From positions 3,224,001-3,288,000 of the forward strand of contig JBLDXI010000032.1 of the NCBI GenBank assembly GCA_047495785.1: 64,000 nt of DNA, read 5' to 3'. Shown here piece by piece: positions 9,942-61,440 of this stretch; position 1 is the stretch's first letter; every line of letters starts with the position of its first letter. The notes beneath the pieces were generated by a model, which was not told where the DNA came from, ran no database searches, and saw only the letters and a list, made by a program, of their open reading frames with translations. The translations under genes and the position numbers were made by a program. The DNA comes from Lepidodermella squamata. Taxonomy: Eukaryota > Animalia > Gastrotricha.

Positions 9942-10040
9942 CCTCACTTGCGTAACAAAGCCAAGGGTTAGGGTTAGGGTTGGGGGTGTGGCTTGGCTTG
10001 GCTTTGGCTTAGATACTCAAGTGATAGATACGCAAGTGAG
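9942..10040. repeat. Small hairpin element with internal TTAGGG-like repeats
   Basis: CTCACTTGCGTA ... TACGCAAGTGAG inverted repeat enclosing AGGGTTAGGGTTAGGGTTGGGG. Confidence 0.5.
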
Positions 10041-31839: not shown

Positions 31840-33535
31840 TTAGGCTATTTGTTGCATAGATATGGAGTTATCAATATCTTTATGACAACATCCGTTACAT
31901 TCTAGCTGAATCAATTTCCCGCTGTTATTTCGTTTCTTCCAACTCGAGGTTTCAGGCATGAATAATAAAAGAAATATAAAAACTATCAAAGAAACACCGG
32001 CGAAGACTAGAAAAGTAAATGGTCCGATTTCTTCTTCCATTAGGGGGAATCCAACAGTTACAGCCAACGCGAAGGTCCAGTTGGAGAACATTCCAACGGC
32101 TAAACCAGCCGGCCGTGTAGCTTGGCCGAAAATTTCAGCCGAAACAAAAAAAACACAAGGACCAGGCCCGAGTGAGTAGGGAAGTAGAAAGACTATCAAA
32201 GACACGATGCAACCGACAGCGCTCTAGAATTTTCAATAAATAAATCGATTTCAGGTAAATTTATCGCAACTGACCGGGAAGTATAAAAAGCACGTGAGCA
32301 TAACGCAACCAGTAATGACCCCAGCCAGGCCGAATAACACCAAAGCTCGTCGCCCCAATCTATCTGAAGTAAACATATTAATCCAATTGCCGGTCCAATT
32401 AGCGAACGAAATTCCTAGCGTTGCTATGGAAGCCGTTTCTTCATCCAACCCAACACTGCGAAGGACCTTGGAAGAGTAGGCCATTATGGCGCTCAGGCCT
32501 GTAGCTCGATTAGCCGCATGGAGGTAAATGACTAGAACCAAGCTCCACAAATGATGGCGGTCTTTAAGCATTGCTAATAGGCTGATTTTATGAATTTTTT
32601 CGTCTGCTTTCGATGCTTCGACTATCGCATCAAATTCGCGTTTCAGTTCGACTTCGCTTAGCCGCCGAACTTGCTTCAAGGCCTCGAAGGCTTCGAAACA
32701 TTCATGTTTATCGACTAGGAATCTTGGGCTTTCGACCACGAAAAACAACGCCAACCCATGCGTTGTATAGCACACAATATTGAAAACTAAAAACGACTAT
32801 GTTTGCAAAATCAAAAGAAAATTAAGATGGCTTACAGAATAAGTACTGCCATCTATCTGCACTGCCGAGAATGAAAGGAAGGCCGAGAAAATTCGCGAAA
32901 ATTGTGCCAGCTGCTATGGCGAATCCGACCAATGACCCGCAAAATCCTTTCAAACGTGCGGGCGCCAATTCGTTGATATAAGCTGGGGCTAGTACCATGG
33001 AAAATCCGACCTGGAATCCAATTATAGCGCGGCCGATTAATAGGCAAGCGTGATGATTTATCCACGGGGCTATAATCATCGACCAGCTGCCAATGAGACC
33101 GATGACCGAGGCCCAAATCATTGATTTGCGCCTGAAATCCACAGAAAATTCGTGTATTAAAACAATCCTCTCACAACTCACTTTCCAACCTTTCGAGCAC
33201 AAGCTGCGGGGAAATAAGTTGACCCAAGCATGCCGCCCAGCATGAAAATCGATACAACATATGACCACTTCATCGTAAGTTCAGAATCATTAAGATGGCC
33301 TTCGTTGTGATCGATAAAAGTTTGATTGACAAACTGCTTCATGACAGCGTAAGGCCCGTTTACAACACCTAAATGATGGGTAATTAGGTCATTCTGCGCA
33401 GTAGTGGGTCAAATTACTGAGGTTGTAGCCGAACATGAATGACGACCCGAGGACTATCGAAAAATTGCAAGCGATCAGGTACATCGTCCATTCTGATTGC
33501 GATTTGCCGCTCTTCGCGCCCTCCTCGCCCTTCAT
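31840..33535 (-). CDS. SLC2/GLUT-like MFS sugar-porter family transporter T1
   Basis: MKGEEG..GSSFMFGYNL, ELAP..LKG, VESPRFL, SDRLGRR, GPGP, PET motifs; multi-exon. Confidence 0.88.
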
Positions 33536-33764
33536 TTCAAGGGCTGTCTAGTTTTTTGGGTGTAAAAAAACCTTTGGCTACCACCACTATCACTTGCCTT
33601 TCGCGTAGACGTGTCTTATCTTTCGGATTACGAGAACGCTTGACCTTGTTTCCACACCTTTCTTTTTTGACCGATAATAAGACATGAAAATCCTGGCAAA
33701 TTGAACCATCATTGTAATCTGTTTTATTCGCATATCAGCAAGCGAAAATAGTTTTGGTGCTTTC

Positions 33765-35564
33765 TTACCAATCGCGATAAAAATTGTTGGTGACATAGAG
33801 AGGGACTTCAGGGGTTGGTTCTTTCTTTTCCGGTTTTTTCAGGCCAAGTTGGACAAGAGGTTTGCCGGGGTCGTAGCGATCGGCTGACGAACTAACAGCC
33901 ATGTGACTTGTTGTTTCCGGTAGGTAAAATAGGCAGAAAATAAATTCAAGCAGAGAAACCGCCGCAAATGGCAGAAACGAAAATTCGCCGATTCGAGTTT
34001 GCATTTCGGGGAAAATTACGCTGCAAATAATGTTAGCTGTCCAGTTTGCGAACATCGTAATGGTTTGCGACAGGGGACGAGCGGCCTGGGTGAACATTTC
34101 ACCTGGCATAAAGACGGGACATGGACCCGGTCCTATGGCGTAGAAAAGGTGGAAAAGAGCAAAACCGGCAATGCTGGCTTGAAAAACCTGTTTTAATTCA
34201 AAAAGTGAAATTCTCATCCTATAGATCTTAACTTACGTCGAAGTAGAGGACTGTGACTAACATCGAAAGAGCAATGCTAACGCCCATTGTTCCGATAAGG
34301 ACAAGAGGTCGACGTCCAACTCGGTCGACAATCGCGAGGTTGATGATATTAGCCGATGTATTTGCGAGTGAAACCCCGAAATTCGCCAGGCCAGCTGTGT
34401 CTAGATCAAGACCAGCGTCTCGCATGACTTGGGTCGTGTAGAACAGAACAGCAGCTAGCCCGGTGAGTCGGCTGATGATCTGAAGATTGATGACTACGAT
34501 GAGCGACCACCACAGGGTGCGGCGGTTGAAAATGTCTCGAAAAGTAACCACCTTAATTTTCGCTTCCTCTTCTGCTGCTTTCTTCAATTTTGTGATTTCC
34601 GGGGCAATCTCGAGCTCATTCGCTAATCGAAGTTTCTTCAAAGCTGACCTAGCATCTTTCTCTCGCTTTTTGTCGATCAAATACCGAGGGCTTTCGACAA
34701 CAAAAAATAGAGCCATAAGATGAAGAAGGTAAAAGCCGAGCTCTAGGACTAAATCATAATGTTATTTTCATTGGTGAAAAATTTGAAAAATTTGAAAAAA
34801 GGTCCTACGGAATAAGTAGTTCCAGATGTCTTCAGATCCTAGAATAAAACTAAGTCCGACCAGGTTCGAAGTTACAACGCCAACACTTATTCCAAAGCCG
34901 AGTAAACTACCGCAAGATCCTCTTAGTCGATCTGGCGCCAGCTCAAGAACTAGAGGTGGGGCTAGAACCATGGAAAGGCCTGCCTGAAAGCCAACAATAG
35001 GCCGGCCAACAAACAGAGGAATGTAGCTTCCAGTCCAGGGTGTCACAAATAAAATCACGCTTCCTATCATTCCAACTATCGAACTTATGATCAATCCTTT
35101 TCTCCTATATAATATAGGAAAGAAAATTTGAATGAAAAAAATTGAATTTGATTTACTTTCCGAATTTCTTTCCAAGGGCTCCTGGAAACCAGAACGTGCC
35201 GGCGAAACCGCCGAAAAGGTAGAGGTTGACTATCCAGGACCATTGAAATTTCAACTCATCGGCTGTCAATATTGTCCCCTCATTTGCGAATGACTCATTG
35301 ACAAATTTGTTAACGACTGCGTAAGGGGCATTTATCACGCCTGTTCAAAGTAATTTTATTAGGAAGGCTTATAACTGTTTGAGGCAAACCTAGGTTGTAA
35401 CCAAATAGGAATGCTGATCCTAGGACTATGCTGAAGTCACAGAAGGCCAGGTAAGGTGTCCATCGTTGCTTCTGAAGTGGAGCATCAGGGTCCTGTGTGG
35501 TGAATATGGTCGGTTTTCCATTTGCGTCCAGACCCAGTTCTTCAATAGGAACTTCTTGCATCAT
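33765..35564 (-). CDS. SLC2/GLUT-like transporter T2 (3' end may extend via one more intron to 33590)
   Basis: GSAFLFGYNL, ELAPDRLRG, VESPRYL, VDRVGRR, GPGP, LPET. The stop overlaps a good donor (GATTG|GTAAG), so the C-terminus is ambiguous. Confidence 0.88.
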
Positions 35565-35713
35565 TTTTAGCCAGCTTTGAGTTTAAAGTGAACCAACAGG
35601 TGAAATTAGCTCAGGAACGCATTATAATGCACGGTTTTATTACGACCCTAATCAGTTCTTTATCAGGAGTTTTACCTGGTTATTCAGCTCTGAGTTTATT
35701 TTTTTATAAATAA

Positions 35714-37503
35714 TCACTTTCTCAGCCTTTTTCGTAGTTGAAGCAATGGCTTGCCCGGAGCATATCGATCTATTGGAGTTTCATCAACTAGTTTACAACT
35801 AGTTTCAGGTAGGTACAAAAGCGAAAACAAAAATCCGATAAAAGAAATGAAAGCAAATGGCAAGAACGCGAAATGGCCAGTCAATAATTGAAGAAAGGGA
35901 AACAACAAACTACTGGCAATGTTAGCCAACCAATTCGTGAACATTGATATGACCATGGCAGTAGGTTTCGCTGATTGAGTGAAGAGTTCGGCCGGCATAA
36001 AACCAGCTATAGGTCCAGGCCCGGCAGAAAAGGTCAGATGGAATATTGCAAAGCCGGCTATACTGAGTTCGAAAGCCTGATAAAATAAAAGTTGAATAAT
36101 TTTTATGAATTGATTATAAATTAAATTAAAATTAATTATAATTAAAATTAAAATTAGAAACTTAAAAAAATAAACAATTAATTGGCAATTAAATTAAATT
36201 AAATTAAATTAAAAAATTAATAATTAAAATGTATTAAAATTGTATTATACCCCGGCTGATAGGACTACTAAGAGGAGAATGTTGGCTATGGTCATCCCAG
36301 CCATAGATAGAATCATCAATAGCCGCCGTCCGACGCGGTCTACAATCAGCATGTTAACCCCGTTTCCGATCAGTAGCGCTAAGGAAACGCCTAGATTCGC
36401 GAGACCAGCTTCGTCTTTCGCCAGGCCAGCCTCTTTCATAACATCAGCCGCGTAGAAAAACACGGCAGTTATGCCAGTAAATCGGCAGTAAATTTGCAGA
36501 TTTATAACGATGAAGATCGGCCAGAGGAGGGATCTGCTTTTGAATATGTCTCCGATAGATATGAACTCGACTTTCGATTCAGCCTCGGCGATTCGGCAAA
36601 TCCCTTGAAATTCTTGTGTCACGTCCGATGTGCCGCGTAATTTTCTTAAAGCATCTATAGCTTCATCGTTGAGTTTTAGATCGATGAGACTTCGTGGACT
36701 TTCGACAACGAAAATCATGCTGATTGCGTGAATCAGGTAGAAAAAGAATTCGACAACTGCGAAAAATATTGAGATAAATTACGGCAAATTTATCAGGAAT
36801 TTAACGTACGAAAGAGGTAATTCCATCGGGTTTCGGTTCCGAGAAGATACTGCAGGCCGAGTAAATTCGAGAAAATGATCCCCACTGCAAGGGTAAGGCC
36901 AATCAGACTACCACAGGCTCCTCGAAGTGAAGACGGTGCCAACTCTAGGATTAATTGAGGTGCGATGACAAAAGCCAATCCTGAGTGAAATCCGACTAAA
37001 AATCGGCCGACCAGCAGTGGGATGAAGCTGTTAGTCCATGGAGTAATAAAAAGGACAACGCTGCCGGCCAATCCGATCGCTGAACTGAAAATCAGTGCTT
37101 TTCGCCTGAAACAAAATAAAACAGAATTTTAAGAAAACTGCAAATAATGATTTATTTTTCGATCAATTTACTTGCCTACAGCGCGTCCAAGGGCAGCAGG
37201 GAACCAGGTGGAACCGACAAGCCCGCCGATAAGGAAGATTGTTACAATCCAGGACCAGCAGGTCTTCAACTCGGCGTTCGAGAAATACTCACCGTTGCCT
37301 ATATTAATCGATGTTTCATTCACGAATGCGAGAATCACAGTAGACGGAGCGTTGATCACGCTTAGATTGTAGCCCATCGTCACTGAAGATCCGAGTATGA
37401 CGGCGAAATTGCAGAAAATTAAGTATAACGTCCATTGGCTTGATTTTTTAAGGACAACTGTCTGAACTAGAGGTGTAGCAGTATCGATGGTCTCGTGATC
37501 CAT
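35714..37503 (-). CDS. SLC2/GLUT-like transporter T3
   Basis: GSSVTMGYNL, ELAPSSLRG, VESPRSL, VDRVGRR, GPGP, LPET. Confidence 0.88.
36105..36240. repeat. AT-only (AAATT)n low-complexity tract in last intron of T3
   Basis: TTAAATTAAAATTAATTATAATTAAAATTAAAATT..AAATTAAATTAAATTAAATT. Confidence 0.7.
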
Positions 37504-39885
37504 AAAAAATTTAGCAGTGTGCTGTACAAAACTTTCAGGTTATGTTGTATAAAATGCTGTAGACTTCAATGGATATCCACTCATCCATTTTATTCATCGG
37601 TCACGCCTCATTTGATGAAACTAATCGGCCGCCAGGCTAATGGACTCTAAACGAGAGCAAGTTATCATGAAAGCTCTCGTCGATAGCCGTTTGTTCTGAA
37701 TTTTGTCTGCCGAGTCAATAAAAGAGTCTGACGAGGCGTAGCCGATTCAGGGCACGAGCGGCTATCGGCGAGAGCGAGGGTGCAGATTCATTCATATAAT
37801 TGTGGATGAAGCGCGCTCCGCTAGGGCAAAGCCGCTTCTTTGGGGGGAACACGCGCTTTTTCAGTTAGATATTTTAGAGGAACGCGCTTCCACGTTCACC
37901 CAAGTCCTAGGTGAACAGCGTGTTCCACTAAATCGCGGTCTTAGGGTAACATGCGGCTAGGGTGCGATTCGAATATAATCAGCGATTTTGGTGAATTTTT
38001 TAATGCTAGTACAGATTCTAAGAGTGGCGACAGCTTAACTGCGAACTAATAATCTTGTGCAAATTTATTTTCTGAAAATAGCTACGCTTGCCCTCTCTGG
38101 TTAAAAAAGGGGTAACAAAGAGCAACTGGGTAATGCTTTCCCGCGAAAATGTCTGCAAAAATCAACATTTATTCTCGCTAACTAATGATTGAGCTATGTA
38201 TCGTTGTAAATAATGTGTAGATAGAATAGAGCTGCGTATTTCACCTTACATCTAAAGTCTGCCCGAAATGTCCTGACGCTATAATAATTTCATATATTTC
38301 ACAACAAAAAATCGATAATTTAGCATTTTTATTGATCGGGGGAGTTGAATAATAATATAGCTGTGAGAAAGACGGAGATAGCAAAATAGAGCACCAACCA
38401 TTGTTGGTCTACTAATAATAGAGAGATTGAAAAGATGATTGAAAATAAGACTTGGCCATTTTCAAGACTTTTCAATTTCATACGGCGAATTGTCAATTTT
38501 ACAAAAATATATATTTTTACAATCGAAAAGTCTGACGTAAAAATAAAATTGCTGTTTCCTCCTGAAATTTCAGAAATGCAGAGCCCCATTCTGTTTTTGT
38601 TTACTCTGCTTACTAGTACTGCTTACTACTACTATTATCCGATCAATAAAAGAGCTAGATTATTGATTTTCTGCCTTGCTATGTAGCTAACTGTAACATA
38701 TACGTTTGTATATAGCGCCATGACTTTTCGGCCGGACGGTATTTTAATAGACCGCGGAAAGCGTGCTCACTGAATATATTCGAATTTTACGGGAACGCGC
38801 GTTGCTCTAATAGCGCGAACAGCGCGCTTTGAGCACGCTTTCCTCTGAATCGCGGGTTAGCCTACTATATAATATTATATGTACAAAACAATGAATAACA
38901 AATAAGGCCGTAATCTCCCTGACTCTCAAACCTCGCTCATTTTTTAAGGAGTAGGTAATTGCAATTATTTTTGTGGCAATACCCGCAAGAACAAAAAAAT
39001 CAGTATTATTCCTAAAATTATGAGCGTGTCTAAATATAAATATAAATCTCGAAAGGATGATGAAATTGAAAAATAGCCGCGAATAAAAAATCATTGCCTC
39101 GTCGATGCCTCGGTTGAATTCAAATTTTTTATCAGCTTGGCCCCGGAAAATGGGCGCCATATTATAATAAAGAAATCGGGCTTTTGGGTGAGAGTTTTAC
39201 CGTCCTATCGCGTGATAGATTTGAAATGTACAGTTTATCAGTTTAAAATTTATTAGTTATTTATTAACATAGATGAGGATGTTATCGGCTCAAAAGATCT
39301 CTACTCATATATAATAGTATATTCGCGGTCAACAGGTGGTCTGTTATAAGTTCATCTATCTAAATGGCTGTATTTTGTCGCGAAAAGATGTGAAAAAGTG
39401 TATTCTTAAACGTTCCAACATTTGCATTATAATTCATAAGACTCAGCTTTCATCAGCTCTTTCATGTTATTTTGTCGTAATTTTCTTCCATTCATAAAAA
39501 CTAGATAGTGTAGTAAGTGTTTGTTAAAACTGCTCATCAGGTTACCTGGAATAGCCGTACTATACAATGGCGAGTCCGCACGTGCCGCTGTATTTTGTAC
39601 CGGTGGCTCTTCACTACTTCCAAGGTGAGTTATGCAATATGTAAATAACTTGGCACGCAGCTATAGTAATATTCCTTATCTTCTATATTATTGCACTCAT
39701 TATCAAACTCAATTTTTTTACGACGGCTATTTTACACTACTACGCCGTGATTACATTTGACAAAAAATACGAGAGAGCCGTTATCAATTGCAAAAATTAT
39801 TACGCTACAATATATGGCCTGGAAAATCATTAATTCAATCCATGATATAATCGACTAATAATTGCTTAAGAAAGGCCGCGGCATT

Positions 39886-41609
39886 ATGGCTAGCGATGAA
39901 AAGGCTTTGAATCAAAGTTCCGACAGGATGGGCACTTCGACCCAGCACATTGGCCTGATCGATAAACCTAAACCGCAACTCTACAATCAAAGATGGACTG
40001 GCTACCTGGTATTCTGCGATTTCATCATCGTCCTCGGAACTTCGTTTTTGTTCGGCTATAATTTCGGTGAGATATAAAAAATCTTGTCTAACCAATAATC
40101 AGGTTTTTTCAGGTGTTATCAACGCTCCGTTTGCAGTGATGAGCAGATACGTCAATGAAAGTTTTGCGGCCGATGGCGTAATTTTGTCAGCTACAGAACT
40201 AAAAACTCAATGGTCAGTTATAGTCACTCTCTACCTGATTGGCGGCATAATCGGCTCTGCCTGGTTTCCAGGGGCTTTGATGGCCAGGTTCGGCAAGAGG
40301 GATAGCCTCTTCGTAGCCTCCGCAATAGGAATGGCAGGTTCAGTCGTTATTCTTATCACACCATGGACTGGCAGCTATGTCCCGATGTACTTGGGACGAC
40401 TTGTCCTGGGCTTCTCGGCCGGTTTAGCTATGACTATAGCGCCGCCTTTGATCATTGAACTAGCCCCGGCGAGACTAAGAGGCTTCTGCGGGAGTTTAAT
40501 CGGCCTTGGAATCAGTAGCGGTTCGCTGGTATCCAACTTTCTTGGCCTGAGTTTTGTCCTTGGATATGAAACAACTTGGCAATACCTCTTCCGTAAAATT
40601 TCGAAAATTTCCATAAAATCAAAATAATTTGTTTTATTTTTAGTTTTCGAATTAGGAATCTATGTCTTCCATACTGTCTGTATGTTTTTTGTTGTGGAAA
40701 GTCCGCGAGCTCTTATCGACCAAAAGAAAGAAGACCAGGCAATGAAAGCTATGATGAAACTAAGGAATGGCTCAGCGGATCAAGTCATGCCTGAAATCGA
40801 TGTTCTCAAAACTATGGCTGAGCAAGAGGCGAAAATTGAGAGAATTTCGCTTGCTGGAATATTCCGAAGCCGAACCTTATGGTGGTCGCTGTTTGTAGTC
40901 ATTCACCTCCAGATCTGCAGTCGTTTGACTGGCCTCGCCCCGGTGCTATTCTACGCAACTCAAGTCATGAAAGACGCTGGTCTAACGCCCGAAATGGCCG
41001 GCGTGGCTAATCTAGGCGTTTCATTTGGCAATCTAGCTGGCAATATATTCAACGCGATTCTAGTCGATCGAATAGGACGTCGAATTTGCATGATTATCGG
41101 TCTATTTGGCGTAGGGGTGGCTCAAATAATTCTCGTTATTGTTCTGCAATATAAGGTGGATTTGAATTTTCCGATAATTTCTTCTATTAAACGAATTTTT
41201 TCAGATTTTTGAAGGGAGTATTGTTGGATTCGCGTTATTTCACCTGTTCTACGCTTTTGGCCCGGGTCCAGTTGGAGTCTTCCAACCGGCGGAAATGTTC
41301 ACTCAAGCAGCACGGCCAACAGCCATGACTGTTTCGATGTTATCGAATTGGGTCGCGAACATTATTTGCAGTTTCGCCTTTCCAGCCCTCCAAATCAGCG
41401 TCGGTCCGTTTTCTTTCCTACCCTTCGCGATCATTGCTATGCTTGAATGCGTATTCTGCGTGCTGTTCCAACCCGAGACAAGTAGCAAGAAAGCGACAAG
41501 CTCAGCCGCTGATCGTTACGATCCTGGTAAACCGCTGTTACAGCTGGAAATGTGCAACAAAAAGCGAAATTTGAGATCTGAAGCGTCGGACAATAATGAA
41601 GCTTTATAA
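39886..41609 (+). CDS. SLC2/GLUT-like transporter T4
   Basis: MASDEK..GTSFLFGYNF, ELAPARLRG, VESPRAL, VDRIGRR, GPGP, QPET; divergently oriented from T3. Confidence 0.88.
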
Positions 41610-41940
41610 AATAAAAATATTTTACGATAAAGCAGAACTGCAAGAATTTTCGAAAATTTCCAAGGCTTCAAAATCGGGCTCAAAGCATCAAAATGTTGAG
41701 GATAAATATTTTTTTTATGGATCATGAGCAGCTAACCATCGAAACTTCAGGAAAACGGAGGTTCCATTCTTTTACACTGACAAGCAATCGTAAATGCTTA
41801 CAATATCGCCTAATATAGTTCGAACGGTATTTCTCACTTTCTCTGATGTATAAGTCACTTGAAATTAGATTTTAATGAAAAGTTGAAAGCAAACATTCAA
41901 CAGGTAACTGCGAATGATAGCGTGCAGTTGATAGCAGCAA

Positions 41941-46916: not shown

Positions 46917-46931
46917 TATTACCGTGGCGGC

Positions 46932-48758: not shown

Positions 48759-50035
48759 TCAGCTGGTCATTTTCACTCCATAATAAATGAGGACAAGGAA
48801 TCCAATACTTGTCGACAACCCCATGACCAAAAAGTCCGCCAAACGTATCAACTTGATACTGAAACGCCCGTTTTTAGATGTCAAAATCTTGCGATTCAGC
48901 CATTTAATTTCAGCCGCCGTGCAAGCAAACGGCGTGTAGATTGTTATCAAAAAGCAGATCAGCATGAAGGCTAGTAGAATATTCATGATGTAAACATCTT
49001 CGGATGTTTTCGGCATCAGGCTAGAGACCAGCGTCTGCAGGACAGAAACTGACAAATTGACAGTTACGCAAAATGCAGGCCGGTCAGGGTGGTCGGGTGA
49101 CATAATTAAGGCGGCGATCTGAAGGGCGTACAACGCAATTGCTGGTACGAAGATGTTACCGGCGTAATACTGATATTTCCGCTGAATGTACAATTTCATA
49201 ACCATGTGGTCGTAGCCACCTTCTAATGATTGAGAGAAGTTTAAGCCTAACAGCTCCCAAATATCGTCGTCTAGCAGCGGTTTGCCGTATATTTCAAAAG
49301 TTCCTCGAACAAAATTCAACTCATTCGATAAATATTCAGTTTCGAACTCGAAGGTGCACCAGGCGGTGTCGAAGGGAAATTTCTGGAAATTGAATCCATA
49401 GCATTTAGTAGATATTTGATCTGTTGTCAACATATCGCCAAACGGTGGCTCTCTCAATGCGAATATCGTGACGACTCGTTCTCTGCAAATAAAATTAAAT
49501 AAAAATCGGAATAAATTCATATTATCAATTATTACTGCCGTAGAGGTCTAGGATTTCCGATTGCATTAACATGTTGAAGGTCCGGCCACCAGATGTCATT
49601 TTTCGGCATCTGAAAAGCGATTCTTTTCTGGATTTCGATGTCAAGGTCTTCATAGCCAGGCATCAAATCTGATCTGATATCTCTTCCGCAGGGAAAGTTC
49701 CACTCGACCAAAATCATCGCCATTGCAGTCACGCTTGTGAGTCATAAATTTGAGTAATTTCAGATATAGGTGATAATAATCGAGAAAAATTACCTCATTT
49801 CGACATCATTAACTTGATTAATATTCATCAAAGCCATATCTAAATTTGCAGTAATCGGGTTGCTGAAATTTTTCGAGTATAACTGCCAATCAGTAGGCAG
49901 TTTAGGGCCCTTGGCAATAGGGCAAAGCTCGAAAAAGCGGTCTCTCAATTCATTAGACGCGTTAGTACTGAAGTTCCAGCTACCTACTACAGGGCTGAAA
50001 GAGAACAGGAGGGCGACGATAGCTGAAATCGCCAT
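48759..50035 (-). CDS. Divergent Cys-loop (pentameric) ligand-gated ion channel subunit L1
   Basis: Signal peptide, INQVNDVEM, IWWPDL, CYGFNFQKFPFDTAWC, four TM helices with PDHPDRPAFCVT at M2; 3 exons. Confidence 0.85.
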
Positions 50036-50666
50036 CTTACGAAACTGTCATACATACCAGAAATCAGAATGCCAGGTATGTGAGGTAAGCGCAGGAAACA
50101 GCTACGAAGCATAATACTACGAACATATCGCGGAAGTCAGAAAACCAGACAGGGTAAACACAAAGGTCAGGGTAAATGTTGAAAAGTAATCGAAGCTGAG
50201 CAATTATCGTAAATCCGATGATCGAGCAATTTTATACATTCCAGCCATTTCCAAATCGATAAAAGCAGATGCATCAAATCGATATAGATATACTTTTATT
50301 GTATCCCGAAACTAAGAGAAAAATATTCTCCTTAAGATTAAGAATTGAAAACTGTACATGATTTTCCGGCTCAAATTATCACATTTTAAATTTTGAGAGT
50401 TTTAAATTCAAACAAATTTCAACAATCTACCGTCTTGTCGTATCCACGATGGTGAAAATTCGCCGTTAGATTATCATGCAATTTAGGGAATTATTTTAGG
50501 AAGGTTCAACTTCTCATGCTAGATCGAAAGGCCTTTAGCGGAGAAATATACCTCACGAGAGGATATTGTATTTCGCATCAAATATTTACCAACAGATAGG
50601 TAGCCAGATAATAATTTAGACATTTTTCAAGCGATAAAATTGCTGCGCAAAGTTATGTAAAAGCTG

Positions 50667-51890
50667 ATGCGACCTTTCAGTCTTTTCTCTTGCGTCTGGG
50701 GCTTAATGGTAGCGGGTGAAGTTCGTACTGATAATGCGGCGATAATTCAAAATCATTTGCTGTGTGACCCATTTTCCCGCTCAAATAAAACAGTCAACAT
50801 TGATGCAACGTTTCGGTTTTACAATTTCGACGAGATCGACGACGTCGGGCAAATGATGGCTGTTAAAGGCAACCTGGTCCTTACTTGGAACGACGATTGT
50901 TACTATAAGGTCGCTAAGCAATTGTGGCCGCATTTCGACGACACCACCTCGCAAAAATCCTTCTTTCTAGCAATTGACAGCGCTTATGCCGGTCAAATGT
51001 GGAAGCCGAAACTGGCCTTCATGAACAGCGCAAGTGATTCAATTCAAGTCGTTGATGAAAACATGGCCGGGTACCCGATCGACGTTTATTCAGACGGATT
51101 AGTATATACAAGTGCGGCTGGTTTGTGGAAGGCAAAGTGCTCGATGAATCACGAGCTGTTCCCTTTCGATTCGCAGCGATGTGCATTCATCTTCGAAATG
51201 TGGCTCCATGACAGAATGACAAATTTGAGCAGCGTTAGCGTTGCGTATCTCAGCCCGGATAAGGTAGTCACTCAAAAAACCGATCACTGGGCATTTATCA
51301 GTGCCGATTCCGAAGTTCACGCTGAATCATGCTTCATTCTATCAGAGGGTAGCGAGAAGCAGTGTTGGTCGAGGATGACTGTTACCTTGGAGATGAAGCG
51401 CATTTGGCTGCCTTACGTCTTTACGATAATCGTGCCGACAATATCATTGAGCGTTCTTCAATTATCAACTCTGGCTATGCCAGCAAAGATGCCTGACAGA
51501 CCAGTAAATATTTCCTAAATTTCATTGAAGATTTTCATAACAGTTCTGTTACAGGTGTTTTCAACTACAATTCTGCTGGCTTTCGTCATTTTGCAGACTG
51601 ATACTCGCCGAAGTATCCCCGATTCCGCGGTTGTTGTCGCGCTGCTCGTCTATTTCAACGCGAACATCGTCTCGGGCACGCTCATGTGCATCTACGTCAC
51701 AATTATGGTCGGACTTGCAGATCATCGGAAGAAGATGGGCGGGCGACATTTAAGCCCCCGTTTGAAGAAAACGTTCTTCAGCACATTGTCCTTCACTCGG
51801 CAATGCGATTTGGTGGCATTCTTCATATTTTTTGCCATATTTATCGGCGAACATCTGTATCTCGTCGCACGGGTAAATCAAACTGCCTGA
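50667..51890 (+). CDS. Divergent Cys-loop ligand-gated ion channel subunit L2
   Basis: Signal peptide, DEIDDVGQ, LTWND, MWKPKL, CSMNHELFPFDSQRC, M1-M4; single intron at 51504-51554. Confidence 0.88.
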
Positions 51891-52347
51891 AAAAATGAAC
51901 ACACGTCTTTTTCTAGAACTATAACAGAAAATTCTTAAATCTTTGTTTTTCACTCAGTTGAATCATGGCTTAATGTTGCACGAGTGTTTATTTTAAGGCT
52001 GTAATAAAATTTCGCTGAAAAATTAATCCAAAAAATCCATTAATTTTAGAAAAAAATGTTTGTATTAAATATCGGATTGTCGCGCGGCGTAAAGTATAAC
52101 AATTGCATTTTTGAGAGAAGCTTTTCTAAGAAAGGAAAAAGCCTTCCTATCCCCAAGTCATCTGGCGTGATGAGTTTGAAAACTACCGACCGCGTAAACG
52201 ACCGGAGATGAGCGCGCTAACGAGGCTGAAAAAGCCATTAAATGTTCAAAAAAATGCGCTCTGGATCGCGCTCATAATCCTCTAAAAATCCTCTGAAGTT
52301 TTTTCTGCAGCCACACCGCCATTTAAAATTTCCAGCGTTTATCGAAA

Positions 52348-54080
52348 ATGACTCCGAAAAAATTGGATAGCTCCGAAGTTTTAGAAAACAGCTCGCGATC
52401 TTCCGACGAAGGTCATGCAAATGAAGCCTTCACGGCTGATAAAGATTCCGTCCAGCTTCAAAATCAAGGCTGGACAGCGTACTTGCTGTACAGCAACGTC
52501 GTGATAGTCCTTGGGTCGGCTTTCATGTTTGGCTTCAACTTATCAGTCGTTAACGGCCCTTACGTTCATATGAACGCTTGGTTAAACGAAACTTTCGCGA
52601 GGGAAGGCCGTTGTCTGAACGAAGTTGAACTTAATACTCAATGGTCACTAGCAGTTTCACTCTACGTGATTGGCGGAATTGTTGGATCAACGTGGTTCCC
52701 AAGCCGCATGTCATCGACTATCGGAAAGTTTGTATTAAAAAAGCACATTTTTAGAAAAATCCTCCTTAATGTTTTGCACCAGGCGCTACGCTTTGATAAT
52801 TGCTGCCGCCATAGCATTTATTGGCGAAATCGTGATATTCATCGCAAGATTTACCATGAGCTATGTGCCATTTATGCTCGGAAGAATTGTTGTTGGGTTT
52901 TCAGGCGGGATGTCGCTAACAATTGCCCCGGCTTTGATCAACGAACACTCGCCGGCTAGACTGCGAGGTGCCTGTGGGACTATCTTCAGCCTAGGAATCG
53001 CCATTGGACTTGAGGCTGCGAATCTTCTCGGTTTATCATTCCTATTAGGGTCCGAGCAACTCTGGCACTATCTTTTCCGTAAAAAAATTCGCTGGATTCT
53101 TGGAATTTCCTTTACATTCTCTGCTTTACAGTGACTGTAGCTGGGTTATACCTTGTCCATGCAATCGGTATGTTTTTCGTGGTGGAAAGTCCTCGATGGC
53201 TTTTCGACAAGAATCGAGAAAATGAGGCCCAGAAGGCTATGCTAAGACTTCGTAACGCGTCCAACTACGAAACAATCCAACCTGAGTTTGAGCTAATGAA
53301 ACGCACGGCTCGAGAGGAAGCGAACATGCCTGCAATAACCATGAGAACCTTGCTGAAAGATCGACGTCTCTGGTGGCCAATGTTAGTCGTCATCATCGTT
53401 CATATCAACAACGAGTTGACAGGGCTGAGTGCTGTTTTGATTTACACAAGCTTGGTACTGAACGACGGTGGCCTTGGATCGGAAATGGCATCCGTCGCGA
53501 ATTTCGGCATAACCTTTGCAATGGTCTTAGGAAATATCATTTGCGCCCTCCTTGTCGATAGAATTGGTCGACGAATTCTTCTGCTAGTTGGCACGTTCAG
53601 TTTGATAGTAATCAACGTCTTCCTTGTGCTTGTTCTGAATTATCACGTAACGTTTAGCGGGTTGAATTATATACTTACATTGAAACTTTTCCTATCCTTA
53701 TTCAGGTCTTACCAGCAGGAATGGCAGGGTTTGCAGCTTTCCTGCTGATCTTCACTTGTGGTCCAGGTCCGATTCCTTGGTTCTTGCCGGCTGAGATGTT
53801 CAACCAATCAGCTCGGCCTCTTGCCCTCGACATAGCGACCTTTACCAACTGGGCTGGAAACATTATTGTAACCTTTGTCTTCCCAATAATGAAGCTGAAA
53901 ATCGGCTACTTTGCCTTTTTACCATTCGCTTGTATTGCTGCTATCTGTTTTGTCTTCTTTCTACTCTTTTTGCCCGAAACTGCGCCTGGGCTAGCCAACT
54001 ATAACAACGAGAAATTCGCGCCAGGAAACTCGCTGATTCAACTTGGCTGTTGCGAGAAATCACGCAGGCGTCACACCTGA
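52348..54080 (+). CDS. SLC2/GLUT-like transporter T5
   Basis: GSAFMFGFNL, EHSPARLRG, VESPRWL, VDRIGRR, GPGPIPW, LPET; 4 exons. Confidence 0.9.
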
Positions 54081-54270
54081 TTATCGACGGAGATTTCTTA
54101 GCCTCAATTCAAACATGGAAAAATGTTAATACTAATTTTGCAAATATTATTTTATTTAAATATGACATATATTCCTGCGTGGGGTTTTCAGTGATATTTA
54201 TTGATTTCATCGAAGGCCGAACTAATTACTTGATTACTTATTTTTAATTATAAGCATATTATTTTTAATA

Positions 54271-54444
54271 TACCGTATTTTCGCGCTTTGAGTGTAATGC
54301 CACTATGCCCCGTTTATAGTGACATGCCAGATTAAATTTCAATGCAAAGCATTAGATGCCACTAAAATCGAGGTAATTGAATCGGGGTCAATAACCACGT
54401 TTCATTTTATAGGAGCATGACACTCGAAGCGCGGTAATACGGTA
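54271..54444. mobile_element. Small TA-CCGTA-type MITE
   Basis: TACCGTATTTTCGCGCTTTGAGTGT ... ACACTCGAAGCGCGGTAATACGGTA inverted termini. Confidence 0.7.
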
Positions 54445-54988
54445 CAAACATATCGTGAAATAAACCCATCGTTAGTAAAATTGGAATTTTTATTGTATTC
54501 TTTCGAGTTTATTTTACCACGAATATGCTAAAATCTTCGTCTGCTTGATAAGTAAACTCTCGTGGACCAGCACCTGGCCACACACACACTACCTGATAGC
54601 TTTGACATCCACGCACACTTCAAAGTGTTATATGCAAGTGCCGCAAGAGGTGGGATTGCTTGGTCCTCGAGATTCTACTAATCAAGCAGACGAAGATCGC
54701 AGTGAGCCTCAACGTGCAGTCCGACTCAATTAAATTAAAACTATTTTGGCAGTTTCTATTTTCCTCCTGATACCTTGTTGTGCTTTCGTTCTTCACTGCG
54801 TTCATTCTTGTTGTGTTTTCTTGTTGTGTTCCTGAAGATGGTCCGCGCAAGGACCGAAACGTCGCCAATAATTAATAAAGTTGTAGTCAGAAGCAACTTA
54901 AGGCTACCTAAAGCTTTTGATTATCATTTTCCAAGCCGTTGCAACAGTCCAATACTAACACGTTTTAAGCTTTCTAAACTTCGCTGAA

Positions 54989-55255
54989 ATGACGAATGAC
55001 GATGGGCATGGCGATTGCGATGACGAAATCGAAGAGGGCCCGCGACATCACGAGCACGAACTCGGCAATCAGGGCTGGAATGCTTACCTGCTCTACAGCA
55101 ATATTACTGTTGCATTAGGATCAGCTTTCCTATTTGGTTACAACATATCAGTCGTAAATGGCTATGAATAAATGGCTAAACGAGACCTGCTGATGAGTTG
55201 AAAACACAATGGTCACTCGCAGTCGCGTTATACTTGGTTGGTTTGCTTGGTTAAC
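54989..55255 (+). pseudogene. SLC2-like pseudogene T6 (5' fragment, paralog of T8)
   Basis: DDEIEEGPRHHEHEL..QGWNAYLLYSNITVALGSAFLFGYNISVVNG is shared with T8. Deletions, a frameshift and truncation follow. The upstream DNA is also homologous to that of T8. Confidence 0.85.
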
Positions 55256-55426
55256 TTTCAAGCCCAAGTGTCATCACGCCTCGTCAAAAGTATCTATAAT
55301 GAACTGCATTTTATCCCAATCTTACTATAATAAAGTAGTATCATCTGCGAATGCTAGCAGCATAAGCCACTCTTCGTCCATTGAAGGTATACCTGTTTTT
55401 TCTAATTGTTTTACTCGTTTCCAGAC

Positions 55427-55827
55427 TACCGTACTGCCCGGAACAAAAACCATGACATTTGTTTTTTTCAAACGATGATGAACCCCTGACATTTAAAAGG
55501 GACTGACATTTATTTCGGGCCTGACATTTATTTATTCGAACCAACTAGTAACTTGCCCAGGAACCAAAATGGCATATATTTTCCTGAACTTCTACTTGTT
55601 TTGACCCGAAAACTTGGTCCCTGACCTTTCTATGTTCCAAGAGTAGTAATTATCTCCATTCAGAATGGCTATAATGACCTCATTAGTGATCTTCAGTAAA
55701 GTCTCTGCCATTGACCTGACATTTATTTCGGGCCTGACATTTATTATTTCGAATGACCTCTAACCTCTGACATTTATTTGAGGCTGTCATTTATTCGAGG
55801 CTGGCTTTTTTTTCGGGCAGTACGGTA
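55427..55827. mobile_element. TA-CCGTA-type MITE with internal CTGACATTTATT repeats
   Basis: TACCGTACTGCCCG ... CGGGCAGTACGGTA perfect 14-bp inverted termini. Confidence 0.8.
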
Positions 55828-56568
55828 CCTTAAAATCAGCTATATTTTTCAGCTGATTTTAGTGTTGTGCGCAAGCGAGTAAAAAACCGTTCCCAACATT
55901 ACTCAGCTGAGTATAATAATCGATCAAATGTACAATTTTCATATGTTTTCGGGTTAATCAGGGTGGAAAGGCTTGGTAGGCTGATTTGAACGTTTCGTCA
56001 AGAGGTACCAACAGGTTGTATCAGCCTAATATATTTTTGTCTGTTTCAGCATGGTCGCATTTGGGTACGCTTTCGACCTTATCAGAGGAATTTTGAATTT
56101 ACTAATGAATTAAATAGTGTTATTAATCTACCGACCTACAAGGACTTTTGGAGCACCCTGTATTTCTATTTGAGGAATTGGCCGATTATTACACCTTTTC
56201 CATCAATTTGCCACGGCACAGTTTGTCGTTTGCCGTTCTATTTTTAGCATGAACTTGTTCGCTTGAATGATGGCTGTTATTTTTTGCGTCCTCTTCGTCG
56301 TCGTATTCCACTTCTGTGGCAATGATGGTAATGATGGAGGCGGCGGTTTTTTCGTTGCTTTGTCGTTTCGTCGTTTTTTCGCCATTTTTTCAGTTCAGTT
56401 CAGAATAGTGCTAGGTCATAGTGGTCATCCACTTACGGCAATTACAGCCATTCTCGGATAGGAAGGCTCCCGTTATATCGCGGGGTGGGCGACAGGACGA
56501 CTTGCCTAGAATATAAAATAATGGCGTAAAACTAACCTCTTGCATCTCGGCCCAGTCAGTCACGTGTC

Positions 56569-56977
56569 CATAGAGCTAGTTTTAAGATAAGGTCCTACTC
56601 CTGACTAGGCCTGTAAACGCCATGGACGCCAGGTGTTGTGATGAATCAGCAGCGAGTGGTTGGAAAAGTAAACAAATCAGGTGATTTTTCGATTCCCGAA
56701 TTTTTATTCATGGTAATTTTCTTGATAAAATTGTGATGGTACCACGATTTTATGAATTATTCCACTTGGGTTTTTACATTATTACACAAATAGAGATAGC
56801 CCGTTGGATTCCATCCAGACAGCACGTGCGCCACGTGCACATGGTGAGGTTGGGTCCGGAGCTGGATCAGAGTTCGATTGTAGTGAAAAACCATTCATTC
56901 AATAACCATTCTGGCGCCCATGGCGTTTACAGGCTTTTAGTCAGGATCAGGACCTCTATCTTAAAACTAGCTCTATG
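56569..56977. mobile_element. CATAG-ended MITE related to the 46932 element, nested inside an older inverted repeat (~56338-57060)
   Basis: CATAGAGCTAGTTTTAAGATA...TATCTTAAAACTAGCTCTATG, TIR ~60 bp; no intact TSD seen. Outer IR: GGCGGTTTTTTCGTTGCTT / AAGCAACGAAAAACCGCC. Confidence 0.78.
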
Positions 56978-57487
56978 ACACCAACGTAAAAGCTCTCGTA
57001 AGAACGAAGTGAGGAAACGACGAAGCGACGAAGCGACGAAGCAACGAAAAACCGCCACCTCAGAACCATACATAGAACTAGCTATTCATGCCACGTGACC
57101 ACGCGAGCTTTCATCCTGAATCATTGTTAATGTCTTTTTTAATGCTGTGGTTAATCCATTGATTTTCGCATGAAAATGTATTAAATATCGGATTACCACG
57201 CGGCATAAGGTGTAACAATCGCGAAAAAAGCTGCTCCAAGAAAAGAAAACCTGGCTGACCCCCAAGTCATCTAGCCTGCTGTTGGAAACTACCCAGAAAA
57301 TAACGTGTGTTACAGCCAACGACTAATGACGGATATGAGCGCGCTTATCTACCATGCTGAAGAAACCATTAAATTAATGTTGCAAATGCGCTCTGGATCG
57401 CGCTTAATCCTCTATAATACCTCTGTAAAAATAAATTTTTTTATGTAGCCACGCCGCCATATTTAAAACTTCCAGCGTTTATCGAAA

Positions 57488-59233
57488 ATGACTCCGAAAA
57501 AGCTGAATAGCGCCGAAGTTTTAGAAACCAGCTCGCGATCTTCCGACGAAGGTCATGCAAATGAAGCCTTCACGGCTGATAAAGATTCCGTCCAGCTTCA
57601 AAATCAAGGCTGGACAGCGTATTTGCTATACAGCAACGTCGTGATAGTCCTTGGCTCGGCTTTCATGTTTGGCTTCAACTTATCAGTCGTTAACGGCCCT
57701 TACGTTCATATGAACGCTTGGTTAAACGAAACTTTCGCAAGGGAAGGCCGTTATCTGAACGAAGTTGAACTTAATACTCAATGGTCACTAGCAGTTTCAC
57801 TCTACGTGATTGGCGGAATTGTTGGATCAACGTGGTTCCCAAGCCGCATGTCATCGACTATCGGAAAGTTTGTGGTTAAAATTAGATGTTCGTAAAGATA
57901 AAATGCATCCTTAATTTTTGTAAGACGATATGCTTTGATGATTGCCGCCGGAATTGCGTTCATTGGCGAAATCGTGATATTCATCTCAAGATTTAGCATG
58001 AGTTATGTGCCATTCATGCTCGGAAGAAGTGTTGTAGGGTTTTCTGGCGGGATGTCGCTAACCATTGCTCCGGCTTTGATCAACGAACACTCGCCGGCTA
58101 GGCTACGAGGTGCCTCTGGGACTATGTTCAGCCTCGGAATCGCCATTGGACTCGAGGTTGCTAATCTGCTTGGTTTATCATTCCTATTAGGGTCCGAGAA
58201 ACTTTGGCACTATCTTTTCCGTAATTTATTAAGCAAGATTCTAGGAATTTTCTTTACATTCTCCGTTTTCTTGCAGTAACTGTAGCTGGGTTCAACCTTA
58301 TTCATACAATCGGAATGTTTTTCGTGGTGGAAAGTCCTCGATGGCTTTTCGACAAAAATCGAGAAAATGAGGCCCAGAAGGCTATGCTCAGACTTCGAAA
58401 CGCGTCCAACTACGAAACTATCCAACCTGAGTTCGAGCTAATGAAACGCACGGCTCGAGAGGAAGCGAACATGCCTGCAATAACGATGAAAACCATGCTG
58501 AAAGACCGCCGTCTGTGGTGGCCTATGTTGGTGGTCATAATCGTTCATATCAGCAACGAGTTGACAGGGCTGAGTGCTGTTTTGATATACGCAAGTTTGG
58601 TACTTAGCGACGCAGGCCTTGGACCGGAAACAGCCGCTCTTGCAAACTTCGGAATAACTTTCGTCATGATCTTAGGGAATATCATTTGCGCCATTCTTGT
58701 TGATAGAATCGGTCGACGAATACTTCTTCTGATTGGCATGTTCAGTTTGACGGTGATCAACATCTTCCTTGTGATTGTACTAAATTATCACGTACAGTTT
58801 AAAACGGGCTTAATCACAGTCTTTATTGTAATTTTTATGATTCCAGATCATGCCAGCGGGAATCGCAGGGTTTGCAGCTTTCCTGCTGATCTTCTCTTGC
58901 GGTACAGCTGCGATTCCTTGGTTTATGCCGGCCGAAATGTTCAACCAATCAGCTAGGCCTCTTGCCCTCGACATAGCGACCTTTACCAACTGGGCTGGGA
59001 ACATTATTGTAACCTTTGTCTTCCCAATAATGAAGCTGAAAATCGGCTACTTTGCCTTTTTACCATTCGCTTGTATTGCTGCTATCTGTTTTGTCTTCTT
59101 TCTACTCTTTTTGCCCGAAACTGCGCCTGGGCTAGCCAACTATAGCAACGAGAAATTCGCGCCAGGAAACTCGCTGATTCAACTAGGTTGTTGCGAGAAA
59201 AGACACAGCGACCGCGCCACTCCCGATCACTGA
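57488..59233 (+). CDS. SLC2/GLUT-like transporter T7 (recent paralog of T5)
   Basis: Same 4-exon structure and highly similar sequence to T5; the TM10 motif reads GTAAIPW. Confidence 0.9.
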
Positions 59234-59709
59234 GGGACATTCCTTGGCTTCATTTCAAGGCTTCATTTTGGCTTTCTGTGACATTTTTTTCTTTGCCTTC
59301 GAAGGCTGAATTTGTTACTTTCACTTATTTTACTAAAATAAAGCTTATTATTTTTATACAACATGATAAATATCATGATGAAATTATCAACATAAAGAAT
59401 ATGAATTTAACATTACATAATTTTTATTTTTTCCTAATAATAATGCTAAAAATTCAATTCAGCGATCTTAATAACTTCATATCAACACCTATTATATAGT
59501 ATTTAAACTGCGCTTCGGAGACAATGTGGAATTGTAGAGCGTTACGCATTATAAGCTTCAAGGTGGTGGAGTTTAATTGCGTCTCACGTGTCGACACTAA
59601 ACGTACTGACAAGGTCTTTATAATTTGAACAACAAGATTTAACACGCCAGCTAATAGCTTTTGATTGTCATTGGCAACAGTCCAATAACACGTTTGAAGC
59701 TTTGCTAAA

Positions 59710-61440
59710 ATGGCAAATGAAAGTGGGCAAACAGCTGAAGGCGATGGAGATGACGAAATCGAAGAGGGCCCGCGACATCACGAGCACGAACTCAGCAAGC
59801 AGGGCTGGAATGCTTACCTGCTCTACAGCAACATTACTGTTGCATTAGGATCAGCCTTCTTATTTGGTTACAACATTTCAGTTGTTAATGGACCCTATAT
59901 TCACATGAATAAATGGCTGAACGAGACATTCGCAAGTCAAGGCAAAATTCTTGCTGCGGATGAATTGAATACAGAATGGTCACTCGCAGTCGCGTTGTAC
60001 TTGATAGGAGGCCTGGTTGGCTCGACTTGGTTTCCAAGTGGCATATCTTCATCGATTGGAGAGTAGGAAATGTCCTAGAATTTATTCTCAAATTCCTAAT
60101 TTGATTCTTTTGAAGGAGATACACATTAATTATTACAGCTGTAATCGCGCTGATAGGTCAGATTTTACAATTCATCGCTAGGTACTCTGGAAGTTACGTA
60201 CCTTTCATGCTTGGCCGAGCTATCGCTGGATTCTCCAGTGGAATCTCCCTAACAATTGGACCCGAGTTGATCAACGAACACGCCCCAGAGGACCTAAAAG
60301 GTGCTTGTGGGTCAATTTTTAGCCTGGCAATCTGTATCGGAAATCAAGTTGCCAACTTGCTGGGGCTGCCTTACATCCTAGGAACGGAAGCCCTATGGCA
60401 CTATCTTTTCAGTAATAAAATCGTCAATATTAACTTTATTTAATAATTTTAATTTTTTCAGTAATCAATGCAGGTTTTTGCGTTATTCACGGCATCGGCA
60501 TGATTTTCGTTGTGGAAAGTCCAAGGTGGCTGTATGACAAAAAGCGCGAGGATGAAGCCAAACAAGCGATGGTTCGACTTCGAAACGCTGATAATTACGA
60601 CGTGATTCATTACGAATTCGAAGAAATGAAGGAGGAAGCGAGGTTGGACGCCGAAACCGAGGCTGTAACATTAAAAGCTGTTTTCCGCGACCGCCGCATT
60701 TGGTGGCCTATGTTGTTTGTCATAATCCTAAACATCAACAACGAAGTTACAGGGCTGAGTGCTGTTCTCATTTACGCAAGTTTGGTTATGAGTAGTGCCG
60801 GCTTAGACAACGAAACCGCAGCCATAGCCAACTTTGGCCTAACTTTCGCTATCTGCGTCGGAACCATTGTTTGCATTTTCATCATCGAAAGGGTTGGACG
60901 GCGAATCTTGCTTCTAATTGGTACTCTAGGACTCGCTTTGGTCAATATATTTCTTGTAGTTGTTCTGTCACAAAATGTGAGTGCTAATTTTTTGGTTGGA
61001 AAAATCATATACCTTAATGAGAAATTCTTTAGGTAATGCCGGCTAGCATCGCTGGTTTCACGGCTTTTTTACTGCTTTTCTCATGCGGACCTGGACCCAT
61101 GGCTTGGCTGATGCCAGCTGAGTTGTTTCATCAGAACGCTAGGCCTCTAGCCTTAGATGTAGCTACGTTCACGAATTGGGCTGGGAACCTACTTGTCAGC
61201 TTCATTTTCCCGGTTATGCAGTTGAAAATCGGTTATTTCGCCTTTCTACCTTTCGCCTGTGTTGCAGCGCTTTGTTTTGTCTATTTCTTGATTTTTGCGC
61301 CCGAAACCGCTGCTCACCTAGCCAATTATAGCCCGGATCATTTCGCGCCGGGAAAATCACTAGTACAGCTGAGGTGCTGTAACAAAAGACGGAAATATAA
61401 AAATGGCGATCATCAGTTACAACCCGTGCCACATGCCTAA
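59710..61440 (+). CDS. SLC2/GLUT-like transporter T8
   Basis: GSAFLFGYNI, EHAPEDLKG, VESPRWL, IERVGRR, GPGPMAW, APET; 4 exons. Confidence 0.9.

Follow-up and report, generated by a model that had tools for sequence, protein, structure and literature searches.

In GLUT1, glucose is held in a deep cleft by hydrogen bonds from Gln161, Gln282, Gln283, Asn288, Asn317, and Glu380 (review PMC7462842), and the Gln side chain at the 283 position makes this bond in both GLUT1 and GLUT3 (PMC7462842). In GLUT9, the GLUT1 282, 283, and 288 positions are occupied by Tyr327, Gln328, and Asn333 (PMC12943218). Here we analyzed a 64,000-nucleotide stretch of DNA of the gastrotrich Lepidodermella squamata (contig JBLDXI010000032.1, positions 3,224,001 to 3,288,000), which is referred to as the window. 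Its interval 31840-61440 contains one relic, T6, and seven intact sugar-porter genes of the GLUT-like (SLC2) kind, which encode 498-529 amino acids (aa), and in the seven intact genes the position of Gln283 is taken by Arg or by Glu. A sequence-only reading of this interval had proposed two clades with oppositely charged substrate pockets, one for anionic and the other for cationic substrates, and the results described below support that interpretation in part.

The gene models were spliced over GT..AG introns of 46-66 bp, plus one intron of 174 bp, and each of the seven is a complete open reading frame (ORF) with a single terminal stop. The region is eukaryotic in character, with short GT..AG introns and T-rich acceptors. 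The genes are the following.

T1, 33535-31840, minus strand: Arg-type; 5 exons (33535-33418, 33368-33182, 33131-32836, 32786-32275, 32223-31840); 498 aa.
T2, 35564-33765, minus strand: Arg-type; 5 exons (35564-35390, 35340-35157, 35104-34809, 34748-34237, 34187-33765); 529 aa.
T3, 37503-35714, minus strand: Arg-type; 4 exons (37503-37172, 37105-36810, 36756-36251, 36076-35714); 498 aa.
T4, 39886-41609, plus strand: Arg-type; 4 exons (39886-40066, 40113-40592, 40644-41155, 41205-41609); 525 aa.
T5, 52348-54080, plus strand: Glu-type; 4 exons (52348-52727, 52783-53078, 53132-53646, 53706-54080); 521 aa.
T6, 54989-55227, plus strand: relic of a T8-like gene, limited to roughly its first 95 residues, with a stop and frameshifts.
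T7, 57488-59233, plus strand: Glu-type; 4 exons (57488-57867, 57925-58220, 58277-58791, 58847-59233); 525 aa.
T8, 59710-61440, plus strand: Glu-type; 4 exons (59710-60062, 60116-60411, 60462-60976, 61033-61440); 523 aa.

The residues of the substrate pocket were read from phmmer (HMMER) alignments of single exons to GLUT1 (5eqg), GLUT3 (5c65), GLUT4 (7wsm), and, for the exon of transmembrane helix (TM) 7 of T5 only, GLUT7 (9j2n). Because TM4-5, TM7, TM10, and TM11 aligned with the GLUT structures without a single gap, the equivalence of these residues to those of GLUT1 is direct; the alignment of T2 to GLUT1 contains a 2-residue loop gap, and TM8 is in register downstream of it. The TM7 string LQIISRLTGLA of T2 falls on GLUT1 residues 278-288, which places Arg at Q283, and in the alignment of T4 to GLUT3 the Q161 position is Gly. 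The pocket positions, in GLUT1 numbering, read as follows.

Q161: G in T1, T2, T3, and T4; S in T5, T7, and T8.
Q282: N in T1, S in T2, C in T3, S in T4; N in T5, T7, and T8.
Q283: R in T1, T2, T3, and T4; E in T5, T7, and T8.
N288: S in T1, A in T2, T in T3, A in T4; S in T5, T7, and T8.
N317: N in T1 and T2, L in T3, N in T4, M in T5 and T7, I in T8.
E380: S in T1, A in T2, S in T3, A in T4, T in T5, S in T7 and T8.
W388: F in T1, V in T2, G in T3, V in T4; W kept in T5, T7, and T8.
N415: A in T1; N kept in T2, T3, T4, T5, T7, and T8.

The TM7 strings given for the seven genes by the sequence-only reading were exact, and the ungapped alignments to GLUT1, GLUT3, and GLUT4 bore out the replacement of Q283 by Arg or Glu that it had deduced from them; its accounts of N288 (lost in all seven genes), Q161 (Gly in the Arg-type and Ser in the Glu-type genes), and W388 (replaced by F, V, G, and V in T1-T4 and kept in the Glu-type genes) likewise held. 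Q161, Q282, Q283, N288, and E380 are replaced in every one of the seven genes, which keep at most one of the six glucose-bonding residues, the sole survivor being N317 in T1, T2, and T4. The Arg has no acidic partner at any of the tabulated pocket positions, E380 being lost, and in TM5 of T5 and T7 GLUT1 position 169 is occupied by a second acidic residue. The Arg or Glu side chain would, as judged by ungapped homology, point into the cavity; glucose is probably not the substrate. The codons concerned, each a single base away from the Gln codon CAA or CAG, are listed here.

Arg codons: T1, CGA at 32506-32508; T2, CGA at 34468-34470; T3, CGA at 36482-36484; T4, CGT at 40922-40924.
Glu codons: T5, GAG at 53413-53415; T7, GAG at 58558-58560; T8, GAA at 60743-60745.

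By fold and motifs, T1-T4, T5, T7, and T8 are GLUT-like members of the sugar-porter family. All six exons tested (from T2, T4, and T5) matched PF00083 (Sugar_tr) at 33-100 bits, against a cut-off of 22.3, and covered profile positions 2-443 of 452 in both the N and C halves, the TM7 exon of T2 reaching E = 1.8e-28. The top PDB matches were GLUT1, GLUT3, and GLUT4 (GLUT7 for the TM7 exon of T5), with E = 1e-12 to 1e-20 per exon. The sugar-porter signature is present, with G-x-x-G-[RK]-[RK] after TM2, (P/V)ESPR after TM6, D-R-x-G-R-R after TM8, and PET after TM12 (VESPR, DRxGRR, PET, and GxxGKR being intact), and N29, N34, G286, Y293, N411, W412, and the loop motifs are kept in all seven genes. 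An N-glycosylation sequon (NES, NET, or NQT) lies in loop 1, and with the GLUTs as closest solved structures and Asn in TM1 these genes have the features of SLC2/GLUT classes I and II. In proton-coupled sugar porters the proton is carried by a TM1 residue, D27 in XylE; the genes do not show this feature of XylE, GlcP, and STP, the position of GLUT1 N29 being Asn in all seven. The TM10 motif GPGP is present in six genes, and T7 reads GTAA in its last exon (58847-59233), the remainder of which is near-identical to that of T5; this difference may reflect either an error of assembly or a genuine change that possibly disables the protein.

Transcription and splicing of T1-T3 were observed in the public run X1, which behaves as cDNA. 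Contigs of this run skip all 11 modelled introns of the three genes (four in T1, four in T2, and three in T3, the 174-bp intron of T3 among them) at the predicted GT..AG borders, and one contig ends in the SMART template-switch adapter, while no intron-skipping joints of T1-T3 were found in the DNA run X2. The genes are also under purifying selection. Comparison of T5 and T7 gave 0.046 nonsynonymous (dN) and 0.251 synonymous (dS) substitutions per site, that is, a dN/dS of 0.18, and silent sites are saturated in the older pairs, whose proteins nevertheless remain 40-63% identical. A second haplotype was detected in run X2 over window positions 33552-37463 at about half depth and with dense, mostly silent differences, and therefore the source animal was highly heterozygous or the sample was pooled. 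Of the coding differences listed between the haplotypes of T2 and T3, 29 of 35 are synonymous and 6 are replacements, 5 of which fall in the N-terminal 55 residues of T3. The view of the sequence-only reading that the structural motifs are intact and the genes not decaying is thus upheld by the kept scaffold (the GPGP of T7 excepted), the splicing of T1-T3, and purifying selection.

The residue at position 283 was then compared with that of sugar porters from other sources. A profile of the seven TM7 exons retrieved 13,498 relatives from 1.84 billion representative proteins, just 18 of them below E = 1e-30. In 273 aligned sugar-porter domains of other organisms, position 283 was Gln in 244 and Glu in 12, and the only domain with Arg was a gapped, misaligned fragment; these counts are not family-wide frequencies, because the domains were drawn from fetched proteins and are skewed to near relatives of the queries. 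A search of sugar porters for Arg or Glu at this position, which the sequence-only reading had suggested, therefore found a precedent for Glu and no properly aligned one for Arg. The Arg or Glu of these genes is more than chance, and the Arg state appears to be unprecedented within this sample of aligned sequences. Neither substitution was traced to an already characterized subfamily; membership in such a subfamily would have told against the sequence-only reading.

Six of the 12 Glu cases (P0004, P0007, P0014, and P0157-P0159, from ENA and Logan metagenome contigs) are genuine relatives of the Glu-type genes. P0004 and P0157-P0159 are 79-90% identical to one another, and on the TM7 exon the identity to T5 is 48% for P0004 and 56% for P0007. 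All six keep the Asn-Glu pair and the Met at 317, and Trp388 is also kept in P0004 and P0157-P0159, the ones that reach through TM10. For the Arg type, no relative outside the genome was found either in a protein search with the TM7 exon of T2 or in scans of JGI metagenome contigs. The former gave 481 candidates, none with E <= 1e-10, and is uninformative on full-length relatives because only proteins of 0.55-1.75 times the query length were covered; in the latter, the Arg-clade alignment A2 gave no match and the mixed alignment A3 gave bacterial-type sugar porters of at most 31% identity plus two very short fragments. A protein atlas search returned generic Sugar_tr clusters only. Among named organisms no ortholog of the subfamily came to light; its relatives come only from metagenome contigs, and the nearest named proteins are vertebrate entries, about 32% identical, that bear the name 'glucose transporter member 1-like'. 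Because of these neighbours, the mislabelling of the genes as glucose transporters that the sequence-only reading had foreseen is likely. On the contig of P0159, a copper type II monooxygenase gene of the dopamine/tyramine beta-hydroxylase or PHM family lies at 9048-10440, about 8 kb downstream and with a lipase gene between, a linkage that may be coincidence.

Within the 121-Mb assembly, the canonical GLUT-like genes with AQQLSGIN are L020-L024 and L026, and the seven genes of the window belong to a divergent subfamily of at least 17 genes. TM7 reads xxLTGxx in all members of the subfamily, so that N288 is lost throughout, and Q161 is also lost in the members outside the basal QQ group; at the latter position, Gly is common to the Arg-type genes and the AQ group, and Ser is found in the Glu clade. 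The basal QQ members L015 and L017 and the outside relative P0008 (contig L028) have Glu at the Q161 position in TM5, which by sequence is a further charged variant of the pocket. The states at position 283 in the subfamily are distributed as follows.

Gln: L004, L008, L009, L010, L012, L014, L015, L016, and L017.
Glu: T5, T7, T8, and L003.
Arg: T1, T2, T3, and T4.
Asn: L019, which is probably broken.

The subfamily is further marked by a C-terminal motif, [RK][FY]xPG[KNQR]x[LIVM][LIVM]Q[LIV], which lies 12-20 residues past PET in each of the 15 genes (of 17) whose tails were readable; the canonical GLUT-like paralogs of the genome showed no such motif. It was located at the C-termini of the T genes and at L003, L004, L008, L010, L012, L017, L019, L027, and L028, and it is also present in P0004 and P0008. 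This cytosolic motif may be a sorting or partner-binding signal.

In a maximum-likelihood tree built from 225 columns, with the trait columns excluded, the subfamily groups together with a support of 92/95, and the Glu clade plus P0004 is supported at 96/94. T2, T3, and T4 branch in unresolved order with L003, L004, L008, L009, L010, L012, and L014, which form a well-supported Gln/Glu clade, and T1 stands alone on a long branch. Forcing T1-T4 together costs 3 log-likelihood units (p = 0.39 in the approximately unbiased (AU) test), so that the tree neither demonstrates nor rejects an Arg clade. Placement of L003 with the Glu clade was rejected (AU p = 0.0008), and Glu therefore arose at least twice. 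Of the two clades proposed by the sequence-only reading, the Glu clade is thus recovered and the Arg clade is not, although the AU test tolerates it, and the simple split into two clades does not stand, since the seven genes nest in a larger subfamily whose other members mostly keep Gln283. At the protein level, T5 and T7 are 90% identical and either of them is 62-63% identical to T8, identities within T1-T4 are 41-57%, and those between the Arg and Glu groups are 39-46%.

Other members of the subfamily lie in repeated clusters with genes for tyrosine hydroxylase (TH) and DOPA decarboxylase (DDC), in which a subfamily sugar porter accompanies the two enzyme genes.

Contig C24, first copy, 1,682,491-1,692,130 (L059, L061): DDC at 1,682,491-1,684,617; L008 at about 1,685,900; TH at 1,689,425-1,690,498.
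Contig C24, second copy, 1,859,603-1,867,720 (L060, L062): TH at 1,859,603-1,860,686; L010 at about 1,862,500; DDC at 1,864,383-1,865,759.
Contig C1 clusters, 2,305,663-2,347,018: L009, DDC, and TH within 2,314,373-2,319,494; TH by L019 and TH by L003 near 2.34 Mb.

Pfam scans detected Pyridoxal_deC, Sugar_tr, and Biopterin_H in both C24 copies, which differ by an inversion of the transporter-TH block, and each of them is adjoined by a conserved ORF, about 209 aa long, whose GNAT matches are weak and below the cut-offs. It is precisely the Gln/Glu clade grouping with T2-T4 that supplies the transporters of the clusters. Because the copies descend from one duplicated cluster, the TH/DDC linkage counts as roughly one independent association; it gives no more than a hint that the solutes handled by the subfamily are of aromatic amino-acid or catecholamine type and not sugars. 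A literature search for a cluster of TH, DDC, and a sugar transporter in invertebrates returned nothing relevant.

No amine-pathway genes were found beside T1-T8 among the window neighbours examined. The genes are flanked by an LDL-receptor-repeat gene, a LamG-like ORF, and three Cys-loop channel genes (Neur_chan_LBD plus Neur_chan_memb) located at 48759-50035 (minus strand), 50667-51890 (plus strand), and 61715-62940 (minus strand), which flank the Glu-type transporters. The close paralogy of the Cys-loop copies at 50667 and 61873 suggests that a channel-plus-transporter unit was duplicated. Exons of LDL-receptor class A repeats run over window positions 2584-29244 on the plus strand and are probably those of one very large gene. 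As for T6, tblastn with T8 yielded three short pieces in differing frames, with 84% identity over 61 residues and an ORF stop at 55171, and no exons farther downstream.

We favor the reading that the seven paralogs are working GLUT-type carriers of solutes other than glucose with a rebuilt, charge-bearing site. Taken whole, this reading has about an even chance of being correct; its core, namely, that the genes are functional and do not encode glucose carriers, is rather probable, and the step by which charge complementarity would decide the substrate is tentative and somewhat doubtful. In the course of events that it envisages, a lineage-specific SLC2/GLUT offshoot kept the 12-helix alternating-access scaffold and the uniporter-type Asn of TM1, where proton symporters such as XylE have Asp, and the hydrogen-bond network that holds glucose was dismantled, with N288 already lost across the subfamily and Q282, Q161, and E380 lost in most of its members. 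A single base change would have converted the central Gln of TM7 to Arg in T1-T4 and to Glu in T5, T7, and T8, and selection would then have retained both states. The products would be carriers that move small non-glucose solutes by facilitated transport, and the fixed charge in the middle of the translocation path would pair with a substrate group that is ionic or strongly polar, the Arg with a carboxylate or another acidic group and the Glu with an amine or a proton.

Several points weigh against this reading. The substrate is deduced from sequence, and the cavity-facing orientation of the Arg or Glu from ungapped homology rather than from a model; the sample of 273 domains is skewed, as noted above, and the transcript evidence covers T1-T3 of the seven genes. 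With GPGP lost in T7, some copies may be less than fully functional. Moreover, GLUT9 carries the urate anion by means of Tyr327, Gln328, and Asn333, without an Arg at the 283 position, and therefore a charge is neither required for, nor proof of, an ionic substrate. Arg and Glu can also hydrogen-bond neutral sugars, so that charge by itself does not prove an ionic substrate, and in LacY, another major facilitator superfamily (MFS) carrier, neutral galactosides are bound by the charged side chains R144, E126, and E269. The same LacY precedent lends itself to an alternative in which the seven genes encode carriers of a neutral sugar or polyol (for example, trehalose, another hexose, or an inositol) and Arg or Glu just replaces Gln as hydrogen-bond partner of a hydroxyl, as would also fit with hexose carriers being the closest characterized relatives and with the retention of the scaffold, the gating Tyr293, N29, N34, N411, W412, and N415 (the last except in T1). 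We regard this alternative as unlikely, since of the six glucose-bonding residues five or six have been lost together, Arg is unseen at this site in 273 other sugar porters that are mostly presumed sugar carriers, and hydrogen bonding to a single kind of sugar does not readily account for states of opposite sign on one background.

The charged residue might instead serve coupling or gating, the Glu as the protonation site of a proton-linked carrier and possibly the Arg in setting voltage dependence. The strict conservation of Glu in the Glu clade and its outside relatives and the second acidic TM5 residue of T5 and T7 would suit such a role, but known proton-coupled sugar porters use the TM1 Asp, which is Asn here, and in all solved relatives the residue at position 283 binds the substrate, which makes the proposal very improbable. 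There is only a slight chance that the genes are non-transporting or decaying paralogs, that is, sensors, chaperone-like proteins, or tandem duplicates that are being lost. T6 has already been reduced to a relic, T7 has no GPGP, and L019, elsewhere in the genome, looks broken; against decay stand the seven complete reading frames, the confirmed splicing of T1-T3, the dN/dS of T5 and T7, the preponderance of silent haplotype changes, and the retention of all conformational-cycle motifs. To return to the favored reading of non-glucose carriers, an extension of it would hold that this SLC2-derived radiation left sugars for catechol or aromatic-amine intermediates (tyrosine or L-DOPA, dopamine, and N-acyl-dopamine), with the residue at Q283 as charge selector, the Gln-type genes in the TH/DDC/GNAT-like clusters, the Arg-type genes for carboxylate solutes, and the Glu-type genes for amine solutes; this extension is quite improbable.

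Gln283 is among the most constant residues of sugar porters, and natural paralogs under selection that carry Arg, Glu, or Gln at this one site in closely related backgrounds constitute a ready-made mutational series. Such a series lets one ask how the GLUT fold picks its substrate and whether one buried charge shifts it from sugars to ionic metabolites. The linkage of sister paralogs to genes of the dopamine pathway provides, in turn, a concrete list of candidate substrates, and there is a practical warning in that annotation by homology calls these genes glucose transporters though the glucose-binding network is gone.

With GLUT1, GLUT3, and GLUT4 (5eqg, 5c65/4zw9, and 7wsm), the genes of the window share the ESPR, GRR, PET, and GPGP motifs, the TM1 Asn, the loop 1 sequon, and the ungapped pocket helices. 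They differ from these transporters in the replacement of Q161, Q282, Q283, N288, and E380, and of N317 in four of the seven genes, in the formal charge at position 283, and in an overall identity of about 30%, and the C-terminal motif after PET sets them apart from the canonical GLUT-like paralogs of their own genome. In invertebrates, orphan expansions of GLUT-like genes are common. The genes of the window resemble the orphan GLUT-like paralogs of C. elegans in being a lineage-specific SLC2-like expansion that is automatically annotated as glucose transporters, but no counterpart of their Arg state was found. In C. elegans, FGT-1 has been identified as the main carrier of glucose encoded by the GLUT-like genes (PMC3898116). 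GLUT9 (SLC2A9; 8y65/8y66), whose structures match the exons at E = 1e-8 to 1e-17, has the same SLC2 fold and offers a precedent for a move from hexoses to a charged organic solute, urate; the present genes are not GLUT9 orthologs, and at positions 282, 283, and 288 they have N, S, or C, then R or E, and then S, A, or T. The likeness to the OCT and OAT transporters of SLC22 is one of analogy in the idea of a charge switch, with no claim of membership, and no SLC22 structures were among the PDB sequence matches of the exons. In SLC22, an Asp in TM11 of the OCTs and an Arg in the OATs set the preference for cations or anions; that family is a different MFS subfamily, and its switch lies in TM11, whereas the one considered here lies in TM7. 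If the catechol/aromatic-amine reading were true, an OCT/OAT-like charge switch would have evolved independently inside the GLUT fold.

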